DNA of 38,623 bases from Octopus bimaculoides (GCF_001194135.2 NC_068992.1:3360820-3399442); one strand, 5' to 3'; counted from the stretch's first letter, positions 3,397 to 25,949 are shown. Numbers and translations are program-made. Notes: generated from the letters alone by a model not told the origin.

Positions 3397-3491
3397 CTAA
3401 ACATCAGCTTGGTGGCTGGAAGGTTGGTTGGTTGCAGCATCTCCATCAACATCCTTCTTGTCTTTCTTGTTTTCCTCCTCTCCCTGACCAC
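3397..3491 (-). CDS. ZFR: ZFR-like terminal exon (G)[30 protein letters not shown]
   Basis: Acceptor atttcttccAG in phase 1. KKDKKD matches the ZFR C-terminus. TAG at 3399-3397. An AATAAA at 3226-3221 on the minus strand is a candidate polyA signal. Confidence 0.88.
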
Positions 3492-24400: not shown

Positions 24401-25949
24401 CTCACCACTTAACCAGGGTACATTTGTTTACATCCCCACCGATAACACAGCAGATCAGCGAAAAGAGACCCTTATAAAAAAAATGGGATTGATCTGATCT
24501 AAAAAAAAAAAAAAAGGAAAGAAAAAACCCCACCTCTTAAAGAGATGTGTCCCAGCATGGCTGCTCTCAGATGACAGAACTAAGTAAAAATGTTGTCGGT
24601 GTGACGAAGGATGACATATCTGTAGTACTTATTGAACTACGAGTCCAATGTAGATATCACTGGACCTATTTGATACTCTCCAACACTCAAACCCTCCCTT
24701 TCTCATCCTAATCACCCGAGTTCCTTACTTCTCATCTTAAAACATATGCACAAGGGACACTTCCTCACTTCTACATGTATCCTATACCCTCTACCATTAC
24801 GCTTTCTAAACTACTTTGACGAGCCACTTGGTAACATCCATCCATCAATCACTCTCTCCAATTATCTACTTTTTACTATCCGTCACTCTTTCTCTTACTT
24901 CTACCGCCCTCTCACCCTAAATACAAATATTTCTATTGCACCTTTTGTTCCACTCTCCTACCTATGCTTAGTTAAAGAAGGCATAGATTGGTAAGGATTT
25001 CAAAAATTTATGGCGTACAGGGCAACACCATATGTGTTGGTAACACTATAATTCCGTCCAAGACATTGTAAAGTGGCCGATGAGAGAATATAAATGTAGA
25101 AGTGGAAGGGAAAGTCAAGGACATTGTAATCTTCCCCAGTACTAGTGCCTCGGTAAATGCACTCAGTACCCTCGCATGAATGGAGCCGAGAGGAATTTTA
25201 GATCTAAACGAGACAATCGAGAGTGTTTAATAGTGTAACTATGATAAAAATGTGCTTAGAACATTGTATAGTGTTGAGTGGTAAGACGTGTATACACATC
25301 CAGTAGTGGAAACCAAATGAAAAAGTGAAACTTACGAGCGAGTCACGGTCGTTTGTCTGGAAGAGCAGAAACGATCCGTCCAAACCATACCAGCATGGAA
25401 ATCGGACGACGTGAAACGATAGATTTTATACATACATACATACAAACACACACACATATGAATGCGTGTATATATATATGCGTATTAATATATAATATAA
25501 ACATTTAATGTATAAATATAACGAATATAAATCAATAAACTAAGAGCACGTTGATACATAAATACAAATAAGAATAGTTCAATAAACATGCTAAATATAT
25601 ATATATTTAAACACCATATATATATATATATATATATATACATATATATATATACACACACACAAATTTATAAATTTTTTACAATCAATATTGATTTCCT
25701 CGGAGCTAATCTAAAGTATACACACGCGTGTATATATATATATATATATATATATATATATATATATATATATATATATATATATATATATATATATATG
25801 TATATACAGGCGCGCGATTAAGAGACTGAGAGATATATATAAAGTCAAAGTATGATTACCAGTGCAGCAGTCATTTCGTTGGTTTTTTGTGGAGAAGACT
25901 TTTCTTGTGATTTTTTTTTATTTTGTCCTTTACCTCGTTTCATTGTCAT
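3397..25949 (-). CDS. ZFR: ZFR-like DZF-domain protein, spliced model join(25949-25860,17441-17364,16121-16048,15136-15062,14238-14061,13637-13487,10960-10869,10426-10331,10000-9889,8762-8665,7723-7579,3491-3397), about 427 aa
   Basis: The translation matches the ZFR/Zn72D DZF region: [96 protein letters not shown] and a KKDKK tail. All introns are GT-AG and exon phases are consistent (1284 nt, 428 codons including the stop). The last 11 exons are secure. The first exon is inferred. Confidence 0.9.
4094..4356. mobile_element. piggyBac-type MITE, family A
   Basis: TTAA|CCCTTTAGCATT...AATGCTAAAAGG|TTAA with TTAA at 4090-4093 and 4357-4360. No coding capacity. Confidence 0.8.
4411..4555 (-). 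repeat. GAT-tailed RTE-type 3' end repeat
   Basis: Same consensus as 741-975. Confidence 0.85.
5570..5885 (-). mobile_element. RTE-X-type LINE ORF2 fragment downstream of the RT, degraded
   Basis: Decayed translation [18 protein letters not shown]...[10 protein letters not shown]...[12 protein letters not shown]...[10 protein letters not shown]...VQERRL, with stops and frameshifts. Confidence 0.7.
6845..7227 (-). mobile_element. tRNA-derived SINE, near full length
   Basis: Minus-strand head GAGTGACTGTGTGGTAAG with B-box GGTTCAGTCCC (7173-7163), then GGCACCTTGAGCAAGTGTC, then a TA/TG microsatellite. Homologous to the copies at 20648, 23810 and 38272. Confidence 0.85.
7579..7723 (-). CDS. ZFR: ZFR-like exon [48 protein letters not shown]
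   Basis: Acceptor ttatttgcAG, donor ATG|GTAAGT, 145 nt, phase 0/1. End of the DZF domain followed by a basic NLS-like stretch (RKRKR). Confidence 0.95.
8665..8762 (-). CDS. ZFR: ZFR-like exon (D)[32 protein letters not shown]
   Basis: Acceptor ctttctttAG, donor CAG|GTAACA, 98 nt, phase 1/0. Confidence 0.95.
9209..9550 (-). repeat. GAT-tailed repeat with an internal 66-bp tandem triplication
   Basis: Same consensus, with units starting at 9367, 9433 and 9499. Confidence 0.85.
9889..10000 (-). CDS. ZFR: ZFR-like exon [37 protein letters not shown]
   Basis: Acceptor tttcttctAG, donor CAG|GTGAGC, 112 nt, phase 0/1. Confidence 0.95.
10331..10426 (-). CDS. ZFR: ZFR-like exon [32 protein letters not shown]
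   Basis: Acceptor ttttgtgtAG, donor TGG|GTAAGT, 96 nt, phase 0/0. Aligns to [26 protein letters not shown]. Confidence 0.95.
10556..10671 (+). repeat. GAT-tailed repeat, plus orientation, diverged
   Basis: GTGGCTGGCGTTAAGAAGGGCATCCAGCC...CGGACATTAAATGATAATGAT. Confidence 0.75.
10869..10960 (-). CDS. ZFR: ZFR-like exon (G)[30 protein letters not shown]
   Basis: Acceptor tttgcttAG, donor CAG|GTAAGC, 92 nt, phase 1/0. Confidence 0.95.
11308..11730 (-). repeat. GAT-tailed repeat with imperfect internal tandem units
   Basis: Consensus tail followed by units starting at about 11436, 11579 and 11670. Confidence 0.75.
12764..12973. mobile_element. piggyBac-type MITE, family A
   Basis: TTAA|CCCTTTAGCATT...AATGCTAAAAGAG|TTAA. 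The interior is homologous to the 4094 copy. Confidence 0.8.
13245..13430 (+). repeat. GAT-tailed repeat, plus orientation
   Basis: GTGCCACATCAAAAGCACCC...GGAAGGGCATTCAGCTGTAGAAA...TGATGATGA. Confidence 0.8.
13487..13637 (-). CDS. ZFR: ZFR-like exon [50 protein letters not shown]
   Basis: Acceptor ctatttcAG, donor CAG|GTAATT, 151 nt, phase 0/1. Aligns to ZFR EKY...TITLTSPIIRE. Confidence 0.93.
14061..14238 (-). CDS. ZFR: ZFR-like exon [59 protein letters not shown]
   Basis: Acceptor gcctttcAG, donor GCT|GTAAGT, 178 nt, phase 2/0. Contains the DZF signature RALKGVxRVGVLAK. Confidence 0.95.
14325..14666 (+). mobile_element. Palindromic tRNA-headed element with a degenerate hammerhead motif, copy 1 (Penelope-LTR/retrozyme-like)
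   Basis: Head-to-head tRNA-like heads form a perfect 18-bp inverted repeat (14363-14380 and 14395-14412). These are followed by (AAT)n and ACAC-CTGATGA-AGGCCG...CAGCC-AAGATGTT-GTGT at 14540-14585. Homologous to 21465-21796. Confidence 0.75.
15062..15136 (-). CDS. ZFR: ZFR-like exon (A)[24 protein letters not shown](S), low-complexity linker
   Basis: Acceptor aatatatAG, donor AAG|GTAAAA, 75 nt, phase 2/2. It falls in the variable charged linker of DZF proteins. The exon is symmetric, so it could be skipped. Confidence 0.8.
15638..15854. mobile_element. piggyBac-type MITE, family B
   Basis: TTAA|CCCTTTCG...GAAAGGG|TTAA. A partial second copy lies at about 15400-15485. Confidence 0.78.
16048..16121 (-). 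CDS. ZFR: ZFR-like exon [24 protein letters not shown](A)
   Basis: Acceptor gtgtttAG, donor GC|GTAAGT, 74 nt, phase 0/2. Aligns to ZFR [20 protein letters not shown]. Confidence 0.92.
16695..16920 (-). mobile_element. Second SINE family: 3' tail, (ATT)22, then a 5' head
   Basis: The minus strand reads GTACCAGTTGGGTCCTGGGG...TAGTAGAAAGG-(ATT)n-AAGGCGGCGAGCTGGCAGAATCGTTGGCATGCCAGGC. The same head occurs on + at about 8037-8120, and a Deu/Nin-like core on - at about 31770-31860. Confidence 0.65.
16768..16833. repeat. (AAT)22 microsatellite
   Basis: Perfect trinucleotide run. Confidence 0.97.
16923..17130. mobile_element. piggyBac-type MITE, family A, reverse orientation and diverged
   Basis: Ends GCTAAAGGG|TTAA at 17131-17134. 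The interior is the reverse complement of the 4094 and 12764 copies. Confidence 0.7.
17364..17441 (-). CDS. ZFR: ZFR-like exon [26 protein letters not shown]
   Basis: Acceptor ttcttttcttccAG, donor GAG|GTCAGT, 78 nt, phase 0/0. This is the conserved motif at the start of the DZF region. Confidence 0.95.
17692..18552 (+). mobile_element. Internally deleted Tc1/mariner (maT/DD37D-like) transposon, 861 bp
   Basis: TA at 17690-17691 and 18553-18554. TIRs CAGGGTATTTGAGCTAAATCTGA and CAGGGTGTTTGAGCTATATTTGA match at 20/23. Decayed transposase runs from MEEWKPSE (17825) and joins [17 protein letters not shown]...WPSNS...NPMGYYMW...EADGGYFEK. Confidence 0.9.
18885..19985 (+). mobile_element. R4/Dong-type non-LTR retrotransposon RT remnant, interrupted by a repeat at 19224-19570
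   Basis: [21 protein letters not shown]...[57 protein letters not shown] resemble R4-clade RT motifs. Confidence 0.7.
19389..19570. repeat. 26-bp minisatellite, 7 copies (GTGCTTTTAATGTGGGACCAGCACCA), inside a GAT-tailed repeat that starts at 19224
   Basis: Units start at 19389, 19415, 19441, 19467, 19493, 19519 and 19545. They abut directly with no spacers. Confidence 0.95.
20040..20250 (-). mobile_element. RTE-X-type LINE fragment with a decayed Cys/His finger
   Basis: [23 protein letters not shown]...KLWTHKRC...FTCGR resembles the PHD-like insert after the RT in this family. Confidence 0.65.
20648..20908 (-). mobile_element. tRNA-derived SINE, same family as 6845-7227
   Basis: GGCTGTGTGGTAAG...GGGTTCAGTCCCACTGCATGGCACCTTGGGCAAGTGTC with an internal (TA)n. 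Confidence 0.85.
21273..21444 (+). repeat. GAT-tailed repeat, plus orientation
   Basis: GTGCCACATAAAATCACCC...GGGAAGGGCAGCCAGCTGTAGAA...GATGATGATGATG. Confidence 0.8.
21465..21796 (+). mobile_element. Palindromic tRNA-headed element with a degenerate hammerhead motif, copy 2
   Basis: The left arm is an inverted, internally deleted copy of the right unit, with the axis at CATGCCC-AC-GGGCATA. The right unit has an A-box (TGGTGCAGTGG), a B-box (AGTTCAATTCC) and a hammerhead-like core at 21672-21717. Confidence 0.78.
21672..21717 (+). ncRNA. Type I hammerhead ribozyme motif, probably inactive (G12 replaced by A)
   Basis: GACAC / CTGATGA / A GGCTG-GAGGGTATAT-CAGCC / AAAA (GAAA expected) / CG T T / GTGTT. 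Stem I and stem II pair. Stem III is the minimal palindromic type. Confidence 0.65.
21890..23720 (-). mobile_element. CR1/Jockey-group LINE remnant, heavily degraded
   Basis: [88 protein letters not shown], scattered across several frames. Confidence 0.85.
23810..24310 (-). mobile_element. Diverged tRNA-derived SINE copy or composite
   Basis: Shares the GGTTTCGGGTTCGGTCC head, CACCTTGGATAAATGTC and TTATGAGTGGATTTGG segments with the family. Confidence 0.65.
25729..25805. repeat. (TA)n microsatellite
   Basis: Long dinucleotide run. Others lie at about 25617-25655, 20706-20748 and 29662-29718. Confidence 0.95.
25860..25949 (-). CDS. ZFR: Probable first coding exon of the ZFR-like gene ([30 protein letters not shown])
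   Basis: 30 open codons from an ATG in acaaaATG context, with an in-frame TAA six codons upstream. It ends at CTG|GTAATC in phase 0, matching the phase-0 acceptor at 17441, and follows a pyrimidine-rich leader in CpG-retaining DNA. I recognise no homology for this peptide. Confidence 0.6.

Follow-up and report, generated by a model that had tools for sequence, protein, structure and literature searches.

A DZF-only gene in coleoid cephalopods, derived from the 3′ half of ZFR and probably encoding an RNA-blind partner of ILF2

A locus in Octopus bimaculoides raises the question of whether the DZF half of ZFR can exist as a gene of its own, without the half that binds RNA. In flies and mammals, splicing and ADAR editing are tuned by a network in which ZFR, ILF3, and ILF2 pair in dimers that exclude one another. 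Canonical ZFR (Zn72D in flies) has three N-terminal C2H2 fingers that bind double-stranded RNA (dsRNA) together with a DZF domain at its C terminus; to our knowledge, finger-less ZFR is known in flies and mammals only as a cell-type-specific isoform. In a 38,623-nt stretch of the O. bimaculoides genome (GCF_001194135.2, NC_068992.1:3360820-3399442; here called the window), a first-pass annotation had proposed a ZFR-type gene whose product contains a DZF domain but neither zinc fingers nor dsRNA-binding motifs (dsRBMs).

Gene models were built by searching for GT/GC-AG junctions, and the translations were compared with RefSeq. The gene has 12 GT-AG coding exons on the minus strand, running from position 25949 to position 3397 (Table 1). 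One junction model translates exactly to RefSeq isoform X1 (XP_052828024.1, 427 aa) and another to isoform X2 (XP_052828025.1, 417 aa); the gene is already annotated in RefSeq, and the 11 exons plus 30-codon first exon called in the first-pass annotation were exact. Both assembly gaps within the gene are intronic, and the 427-residue sequence is complete. The O. sinensis locus, which has no gaps, has exon lengths identical to those of O. bimaculoides.

Table 1. Features of the ZFR-derived gene and its upstream neighbor, in window coordinates, with the counterpart exons of the full-length ZFR gene of the bivalve Solemya velum
Feature	Position	Strand	Length (nt)	Solemya ZFR (nt)	Remarks
Coding exon 1	25860..25949	-			30 codons, Lys-rich N-terminus; ATG 25949-25947; donor GT at 25859; 100% match to residues 1-30 of XP_052828025.1
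In-frame TAG	26016..26018	-			22 codons 5′ of ATG; read from sequence
Coding exon 2	17364..17441	-	78	75	Phase 0; first DZF exon; counterpart is a phase-0 exon starting VRKTDTSDD
Coding exon 3	16048..16121	-	74	74	Same phase as counterpart
Coding exon 4	15062..15136	-	75	99	Variable, disordered Lys/Glu-rich loop; low pLDDT at residues 90-110
Coding exon 5	14061..14238	-	178	184	
Coding exon 6	13487..13637	-	151	142	
Coding exon 7	10869..10960	-	92	95	
Coding exon 8	10331..10426	-	96	96	DZF_C begins; same phase as counterpart
Coding exon 9	9889..10000	-	112	112	
Coding exon 10	8665..8762	-	98	98	Beginning of NF45-contacting helix 9
Coding exon 11	7579..7723	-	145	139	Remainder of helix 9 and basic NLS-like stretch
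Alternative last coding exon, isoform X2	3558..3622	-			Own tail, then stop; like the tail in Sepia pharaonis isoform P0395
Last coding exon (exon 12), isoform X1	3397..3491	-	95	68	ZFR-type acidic/KKDKK tail ending ADV; stop TAG 3399-3397; matches Argonauta P0002 tail; same phase as counterpart
Assembly gap, 10 N	7288..7297				Inside intron 11
Assembly gap, 100 N	20269..20368				Inside intron 1
C3orf38-like (DUF4518) gene	29345..36366	+			Head-to-head with exon 1; exon pieces ~29345-29458, 31510-31716, 36154-36366; context, outside the ZFR-like gene

The claim that exon 1 is a true N-terminus, originally read from the upstream in-frame stop, was borne out. No AG dinucleotide lies between that TAG and the ATG of exon 1. 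The TAG might itself act as an acceptor AG; this caveat is countered by mature Sepia esculenta mRNA contigs (larval RNA-seq), in which every frame is closed by stops ahead of the equivalent start, over as much as 700 nt. Isoforms of the gene differ at their 5′ and 3′ ends. Since isoform X3 and Sepia isoform P0396 join other 5′ exons to exon 2, transcription starts are heterogeneous, and a very distant upstream promoter is conceivable on sequence alone.

The gene is real and is conserved in coleoids. Every isoform annotated in O. bimaculoides, O. sinensis, O. vulgaris, Argonauta hians, or the cuttlefish Acanthosepion pharaonis is 396 to 429 aa long and DZF-only, and the S. esculenta larval contigs encode the same open reading frame. 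Exon 1 is identical in O. sinensis and matches at 29/30 residues in Argonauta; it is coding and under purifying selection (dN of 0.014 and dS of 0.43 between O. bimaculoides and Argonauta). A decaying, truncated ZFR pseudogene still called by prediction programs could account for the loss of half of the ancestral protein and for a divergence faster than that of other molluscan ZFRs, but this explanation is effectively refuted by a reading frame that has stayed open in five species representing both superorders of coleoids (octopods and cuttlefish), by dN/dS values of 0.03 to 0.11 across coleoids, by the presence of RNA-seq transcripts, and by the retention of 126 of the 129 alignment columns with a conservation of at least 90% among canonical ZFRs. 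The other three columns have changed and are fixed in the octopus gene; the earlier impression that several conserved positions had diverged, as would fit a paralogue, was thus overstated; faster evolution as such is supported. Judged by sequence identity, the octopus DZF evolves faster than canonical molluscan ZFRs, to which it is ~60% identical, compared to 73 to 78% among those ZFRs themselves.

Exon for exon, the 11 exons that encode the DZF domain and tail have the start phases of the final 11 in the Solemya ZFR gene. These phases, together with near-identical exon lengths, indicate that the octopus gene consists of the 3′ half of ZFR plus a new Lys-rich first exon. The original assignment is supported, in that the domain is ZFR-type rather than ILF2- or ILF3-type. 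In a neighbor-joining tree rooted on ILF3/STRBP-type sequences, the octopus DZF fell inside the ZFR group and apart from the root. Cephalopods also carry another DZF-only paralogue, which lacks introns (a retrogene), and the cephalopod clade of the two genes (A+B) received 99% bootstrap support, with long branches blurring its place among molluscs. Both DZF-only paralogues evolve faster than canonical ZFR. We hypothesize that the eleven 3′ exons (DZF and basic/acidic tail) survived without change in intron positions and that the ~550-residue zinc-finger half was replaced by a single new 30-codon Lys-rich exon with its own promoter; this exon sits head-to-head with the C3orf38-like gene.

The first-pass annotation had allowed for either a derived paralogue or an alternative-promoter isoform. 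According to the latter explanation, we would be seeing a short product of a full-length ZFR gene whose finger exons lie beyond the window, with C3orf38 (in Argonauta, a cytidine deaminase gene is the upstream neighbor) nested in a huge intron. There is a precedent, in that human and mouse monocytes make a truncated ZFR isoform by starting transcription at an alternative site in exon 13; it carries the DZF domain but no fingers (Haque et al. 2018, PMC5861047). The length of intron 1 (8 to 16 kb in cephalopods), the 2.4 kb of gaps upstream of the gene in the window, and the other 5′ exons spliced to exon 2 would also fit. However, no long isoform is annotated in any of the five species, and unrelated genes lie ~3.4 kb upstream. 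A tblastn comparison of the whole window with the zinc-finger regions of mollusc ZFRs gave no match, and no finger exon was found in intron 1 or the preceding 10 kb of the gap-free O. sinensis, O. vulgaris, and Argonauta loci, whereas the finger exons of the bivalve ZFR gene lie 1 to 10 kb from the first DZF exon. Among the best 120 protein matches (down to 319 bits), no cephalopod protein of up to 838 aa had a ZFR finger region, and the purifying selection on the coding exon 1 also counts against this explanation. We regard the isoform explanation as very improbable; as far as this evidence goes, the isoform part of the earlier proposal fails and the ZFR-derived part stands; the gene may be either a paralogue beside a surviving full-length ZFR or the orthologue in truncated form. 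Nor is there any sign of fingers in the assembly gaps of the gene, a concern raised at the outset: no residue is missing from the coding sequence, and the gap-free intron 1 of O. sinensis and of O. vulgaris gave no zinc-finger match.

It is possible, although we consider it quite doubtful, that coleoids have no finger-bearing ZFR. The ancestral gene would then have been truncated in place, the only ZFR-type partners of ILF2 would be two RNA-blind DZF-only proteins (the products of this gene and of the intronless retrogene), and the nucleus would lack a conserved dsRNA-binding competitor or cofactor of ADAR, a loss that could be among those changes by which the exceptional extent of coleoid A-to-I recoding was permitted or shaped. 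If no full-length ZFR does survive in coleoids, this gene would be a concrete, testable candidate for a contribution to the difference between their dsRNA-binding protein landscape and that of other animals.

Pfam searches of the octopus protein returned DZF_N (4.5e-33) and DZF_C (1.3e-30) and nothing else; in particular, there was no zf-met, zf-C2H2_jaz, or dsrm match, in agreement with the DZF-only product originally proposed. The NF90 DZF domain gave a full-length match to residues 37 to 374 with an E value of 2.8e-108, and the AF2 model (pLDDT of 80.9) superposed on 4AT7_B with a root mean square deviation of 1.4 Å and a TM score of 0.88. With DZF_N and DZF_C over a nucleotidyltransferase-like fold, the product belongs to the DZF-domain family. 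It lacks the three N-terminal C2H2 (zf-met/JAZ-type) fingers of ZFR/Zn72D and the two C-terminal dsRBMs of ILF3/STRBP, its chain ending 50 residues past the DZF domain. Because it has no fingers and no recognizable RNA-binding domain, the database name “zinc finger RNA-binding protein” misdescribes it. Compared to canonical ZFR, it shares a DZF domain that groups with ZFR, the exon phases and lengths, the NLS-like basic stretch, the acidic KKDKK tail, and the helix-9 residues, but it has a 30-residue Lys-rich exon in place of the Ala/Tyr/Gln-rich region, the three fingers, and the Glu/Arg-rich linker. The product (396 to 427 aa) has a basic N-terminus that is disordered, followed by an intact NF90/ZFR-type DZF fold and the NLS-like stretch.

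In some respects the protein resembles ILF2/NF45, a small nuclear protein and dimerization subunit in which DZF is likewise the sole folded domain, flanked by charged low-complexity tails. ILF2 chains, however, matched in sequence with E values of 4.5e-18 to 1.9e-18, far below the NF90-type DZF, and were second-tier structural matches (22% identity). The equivalents of NF90 helix-9 residues E312, Q319, R323, and F327 are conserved in the octopus protein. Since its side of the interface is that of NF90/ZFR, we expect it to partner ILF2 and not to replace it. With the DZF half kept and the finger half lost, it probably dimerizes with ILF2 but does not hold RNA. We therefore favor, with a probability of roughly 0.6, a protein-coding gene in its own right, conserved in coleoids and descended from the ancestral ZFR gene, in which the finger half has been replaced and whose product is probably a nuclear, RNA-blind partner of ILF2. 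Such a protein would use the conserved helix-9 interface to form a heterodimer with ILF2/NF45, would contribute no dsRNA binding for want of fingers and dsRBMs, and would either titrate ILF2 from its RNA-binding partners or stabilize it. Competition for ILF2, and effects on splicing or ADAR A-to-I editing, are steps that we can only infer.

The best experimental proxy is a recombinant human ZFR_DZF/ILF2 dimer without fingers, which copurifies and binds neither single-stranded RNA nor dsRNA in electrophoretic mobility shift assays (EMSA) (Haque et al., bioRxiv 2022.06.15.495552); that is a laboratory construct. An ILF2-ZFR dimer excludes an ILF2-ILF3 dimer and vice versa (bioRxiv 2022.06.15.495552). 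An alternative is that the octopus protein binds RNA directly, by a different mode of recognition, through its Lys-rich N-terminus and its Arg/Lys-rich C-terminal stretch, and so is not an RNA-blind decoy. Both segments are strongly basic, conserved, and predicted to be disordered, but canonical ZFR shares the C-terminal stretch, and yet its finger-less DZF bound no RNA with ILF2 in the EMSA cited above; no recognized RNA-binding domain is present, and we consider direct recognition unlikely. As a separate matter, the Lys/Arg-rich tails could lend some nonspecific RNA affinity.

The partner may also be something other than ILF2: the retrogene paralogue or a second copy of the protein itself. 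The protein may also have gained a function unconnected with the ILF2 network. The coexistence of two DZF-only ZFR derivatives in cephalopods and their accelerated evolution would suit this idea, as would the helix-9 core, which is symmetric and is thought to have descended from a homodimer. Both paralogues nevertheless retain the NF90-side interface residues, and NF90-type DZF domains have been argued not to homodimerize, because the hydrophobic surface under the NF45 N-terminus would be exposed. A non-ILF2 partner seems to us an outside chance, and an ILF2 partner remains the reading that we prefer.

A DZF-only ZFR as such is already known, since the monocyte isoform has the octopus architecture; what is new is its hard-wired form as a gene in coleoids. 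Mammals make it as a regulated isoform, from a gene whose products include full-length ZFR, whereas the octopus-type protein is the sole annotated product of its locus in the five coleoid species, with a conserved coding first exon of its own and a retrogene copy accompanying it. The human DZF-only isoform did not rescue the one splicing target tested (PMC5861047); the failed rescue shows loss of that function and does not prove a dominant-negative role. Neither this isoform nor the intronless cephalopod paralogue had been noted in the first-pass annotation. Coleoids have fixed the finger-less architecture as a gene under strong purifying selection in octopods and cuttlefish, and retroposition has given them another DZF-only copy. 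What a DZF domain does when it is uncoupled from RNA binding can thus be studied in a natural experiment.

The upstream region contains reverse-transcriptase fragments and the plus-strand C3orf38-like gene. Pfam DUF4518 profile positions 51 to 108 and 205 to 269 matched this gene with E values of 2.9e-12 and 1.5e-22, and positions 2 to 39 matched at 4.7e-5 (23.2 bits, under Pfam's 27-bit cutoff).

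A 330-aa query, made by joining minus-strand reading-frame pieces of the window, matched the 417-aa O. bimaculoides protein listed as "zinc finger RNA-binding protein isoform X2" (P0001, XP_052828025.1), and all residues of this protein were placed in the window with 100% identity. When GT/GC-AG junctions in the window were searched, a single splice model exactly rebuilt this protein, and another did the same for the 427-aa isoform X1 (XP_052828024.1), giving a gene of 12 coding exons on the minus strand (see the table). The exon positions and number, phase matching, and ZFR-type tail proposed in the first-pass annotation were all correct. 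Two assembly gaps lie in introns, but every residue of the RefSeq proteins is accounted for despite both, and the gap-free O. sinensis locus, on splicing, has the same exon lengths; continuity of the reading frame is thus beyond doubt. Pfam profile searches of the product returned DZF_N and DZF_C only, with no match to zf-met, zf-C2H2_jaz, or dsrm, in keeping with the earlier description of a DZF-only protein that lacks zinc fingers and dsRBMs. RefSeq has carried the gene ever since O. bimaculoides was first annotated (XP_014788774.1), and its name there suggests fingers that are absent. The alternative last exon of X2 encodes a non-ZFR tail that is kept in a Sepia pharaonis isoform (EIPRSDMENLSLCEYEA); this conservation suggests that the alternative C terminus is functional.

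Coordinates of features in the window and of the second DZF-only paralogue
Feature	Coordinates	Strand	Remark
Coding exon 1	25949-25860	-	exact splice model
Coding exon 2	17441-17364	-	exact splice model
Coding exon 3	16121-16048	-	exact splice model
Coding exon 4	15136-15062	-	exact splice model
Coding exon 5	14238-14061	-	exact splice model
Coding exon 6	13637-13487	-	exact splice model
Coding exon 7	10960-10869	-	exact splice model
Coding exon 8	10426-10331	-	exact splice model
Coding exon 9	10000-9889	-	exact splice model
Coding exon 10	8762-8665	-	exact splice model
Coding exon 11	7723-7579	-	exact splice model
Coding exon 12, X1	3491-3397	-	exact splice model; KKDKK tail
Coding exon 12, X2 alternative	3622-3558	-	exact splice model
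C3orf38-like (DUF4518) gene	29345-29458, 31510-31716, 36154-36366	+	head-to-head with ZFR-like gene
Assembly gap	7288-7297		intron 11
Assembly gap	20269-20368		intron 1
~190-bp repeat copies	178-333, 741-982, 4405-4557, 9209-9446, 13245-13433, 19212-19412, 38415-38610
Smaller repeat family 1	7045-7213, 20729-20897, 24172-24310
Smaller repeat family 2	14474-14664, 21606-21796
Tandem array, 26-bp unit x6.7	19395-19568		intron 1
Tandem array, 66-bp unit x2.8	9366-9546		intron 9; overlaps one ~190-bp repeat copy
(TA)38	25731-25806		begins 54 bp past exon-1 donor
(TAA)22	16767-16833		intron 2
Second paralogue ORF	L005:10001-11485		Argonauta hians
Second paralogue ORF	L006:1739-3304		also in L015-L024

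Exon 1 had been proposed to be a true N terminus preceded by an in-frame stop. An in-frame TAG lies 22 codons 5' of the ATG, with no AG between the two; since this TAG might itself serve as a splice acceptor, transcripts were inspected for 5' stops. Logan contigs L001 and L002, from Sepia esculenta larval RNA-seq (SRR25114243 and SRR25097171; PMC10442824, PMC10571815), contain an orthologous 420-aa open reading frame (ORF); ahead of it run up to 700 nt in which each of the three frames is interrupted by stops, which bears the proposal out. In another species, a contig from SRR24189495 encodes a product with 93% identity to the Sepia protein across the DZF domain and has an in-frame stop five codons before its start. 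Octopus, Argonauta, and Sepia share both the Lys-rich exon and the MTM(K/Q)R start, and exon 1 of O. bimaculoides and Argonauta differs with a dN of 0.014 and a dS of 0.43. The 90% cluster of P0001 holds O. bimaculoides X1 to X3 (427, 417, and 396 aa), O. sinensis X1 to X4 (427, 417, 414, and 405 aa), and O. vulgaris models of 427 and 396 aa; the models of Argonauta hians (426 aa) and of Acanthosepion pharaonis ("ZFR"; 420, 412, and 423 aa) form clusters of their own. None of the models in the clusters of these five species exceeds 429 aa. X3 is X1 minus its first 31 residues, and the remaining isoforms have a different 3' end or another short 5' exon.

Queried by tblastn, the finger-bearing halves of several ZFRs from molluscs and fish gave no match anywhere in the window; three gap-free loci, Argonauta L004, O. 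sinensis L013, and O. vulgaris L014, likewise gave none in intron 1 or the 10 kb upstream, as expected from the earlier statement that no finger exon occurs upstream. The upstream sequence had been described as an opposite-strand C3orf38 gene plus transposable-element pieces, and both DUF4518 matches and reverse-transcriptase fragments were indeed seen there. On the opposite strand, the first coding exon of the C3orf38-like gene is some 3.4 kb away from the ZFR-like ATG, and this head-to-head arrangement suggests that the two genes share a promoter region or have a bidirectional one. In O. sinensis and O. vulgaris, no C3orf38-like gene was seen in the 10 kb upstream of the ZFR-like gene. In Argonauta, a same-strand cytidine-deaminase (dCMP_cyt_deam) gene (L004:1-6600) ends 3.4 kb upstream; in O. 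vulgaris such a gene lies about 10 kb downstream (L014:50281-50694). These differing sides indicate local rearrangement or duplicated deaminase copies.

To place the gene's origin, we used as a structural reference the full-length ZFR of the bivalve Solemya velum (P0376, 942 aa), mapped on its locus L009. In start phase, the last eleven Solemya exons agree with octopus exons 2 to 12; the lengths are similar (75/74/99/184/142/95/96/112/98/139/68 nt versus 78/74/75/178/151/92/96/112/98/145/95 nt), and the intron directly before the first DZF exon is kept within one codon. Because phases, lengths, and this intron are shared, the octopus gene is a DNA-level descendant of ZFR that retained the 3' half and gained a new first exon. 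As to neighbors, Solemya ZFR adjoins a KCTD gene, and the Argonauta gene adjoins the cytidine deaminase and an FeS-assembly gene.

Cephalopods also have a second DZF-only ZFR-like protein, found as P0035 (Argonauta, 494 aa) and P0020/P0402 (521 aa). In the Argonauta genome its coding sequence is one ORF without any interruption, which marks it as a retrogene; it was found in 159 sample blocks, mostly on 2- to 5-kb contigs, with 5- to 10-kb contigs in 11 blocks. Its N terminus aligns with the Pro-rich linker directly before the canonical DZF domain, which in Solemya is encoded by the next upstream exon, and the octopus gene lacks that exon. Since the retrogene keeps this linker, it was copied from a canonical-type mRNA rather than from the mRNA of today's short gene. 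Its evolution is faster than that of the intron-containing gene (identity of the two sequences, 71%; synonymous sites saturated). In neighbor-joining trees (354 columns), bootstrap support was 100% for each paralogue and 99% for both together, a grouping to which long-branch attraction may contribute. The ZFR-like gene is about 60% identical to the DZF domains of mollusc and brachiopod ZFRs, compared with 73 to 78% among the latter, so that it is accelerated, and the retrogene even more so. Despite this acceleration, constraint is strong: pairwise dN/dS values were 0.03 to 0.11 among O. bimaculoides, O. sinensis, Argonauta, Sepia, and one further Sepia relative, and changes were fixed in only 3 of the 129 columns with at least 90% conservation among canonical ZFRs.

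The protein searches list matches no longer than about 1.75-fold the query (at most 577 aa for the 330-aa query and 835 aa for one of 479 aa), so full-length ZFRs lie outside the range of the DZF query. A Pecten finger-region query returned 554 proteins of up to 838 aa, with no cephalopod among the best 120 (down to 319 bits); this speaks against a finger-only gene model in the proteomes annotated for octopus and cuttlefish, a full-length paralogue being beyond the length range. P0121 was insect-like, and its best 120 matches were mostly arthropods; divergent long ZFR representatives include copepod, ostracod, and nematode proteins. The converse product, a finger-only ZFR with a complete ORF ending just past zinc finger 3, was seen in the annotation of the gastropod Littorina saxatilis (P0414, 516 aa) and in RNA-seq contigs L011:239-1669 (P0462) and L012:28-1440 (P0506). 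P0462 groups with the mollusc-like P0417, P0422, and P0007, which are not especially similar to the octopus proteins. A 423-aa Lingula anatina protein (P0005) was considered as a parallel DZF-only case and rejected: its N terminus is the canonical post-finger linker and a separate partial model (P0415) bears the fingers, so the pair is probably a split gene model.

The crystallized NF90 DZF domain aligned end to end with the ZFR-like protein (E = 2.8e-108), and the match to NF45 was weak (E about 1e-18). An AlphaFold2 model (mean pLDDT, 80.9; pTM, 0.73) had a confident core and disorder at residues 1-36, about 90-110, and 375-417; it superposed on 4AT7 chain B with an rmsd of 1.4 Å and a TM score of 0.88, NF45 chains ranking next and enzymes of the CD-NTase, OAS, and Cid1 types far lower. 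In helix 9, which forms the NF90-NF45 contact, the equivalents of NF90 E312, Q319, R323, and F327 are kept in both paralogues. Dimers of ILF2 with ILF3 and with ZFR exclude each other, and a dimer of ILF2 with the finger-less ZFR DZF does not bind RNA in vitro (bioRxiv 2022.06.15.495552); by analogy, the octopus protein would most simply pair with ILF2 while being RNA-blind itself. Its conserved KPRKRKR stretch makes a nuclear location probable. The DZF-only architecture first noted is upheld, and the reading first given to it is supported in part; for function, we hypothesize that the protein might titrate, stabilize, or redirect ILF2, possibly touching ADAR editing. The architecture has a precedent in human and mouse monocytes, where a DZF-only ZFR arises by use of an alternative transcription start in exon 13 and does not rescue a ZFR-dependent splicing event (PMC5861047). 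In coleoids, however, the locus yields nothing but DZF-only ZFR, a conserved coding exon is dedicated to it, and a retrogene copy accompanies it, and it is this combination that is new; we found no literature specific to cephalopod ZFR or DZF proteins and no paper discussing the octopus gene.

Other upstream sequence and intron 1 hold reverse-transcriptase fragments and short interspersed repeats. The LINE-like RVT_1 fragments, broken by stops and assembly gaps, lie at 22370-22712, 27912-28244, and 33761-34298 (-), one in intron 1 and two upstream, within or beside the C3orf38-like gene. ARAGORN found no tRNA-like (SINE) head for the interspersed repeats. Copies of the ~190-bp family are 76 to 93% identical and occur in both orientations in introns and flanks.
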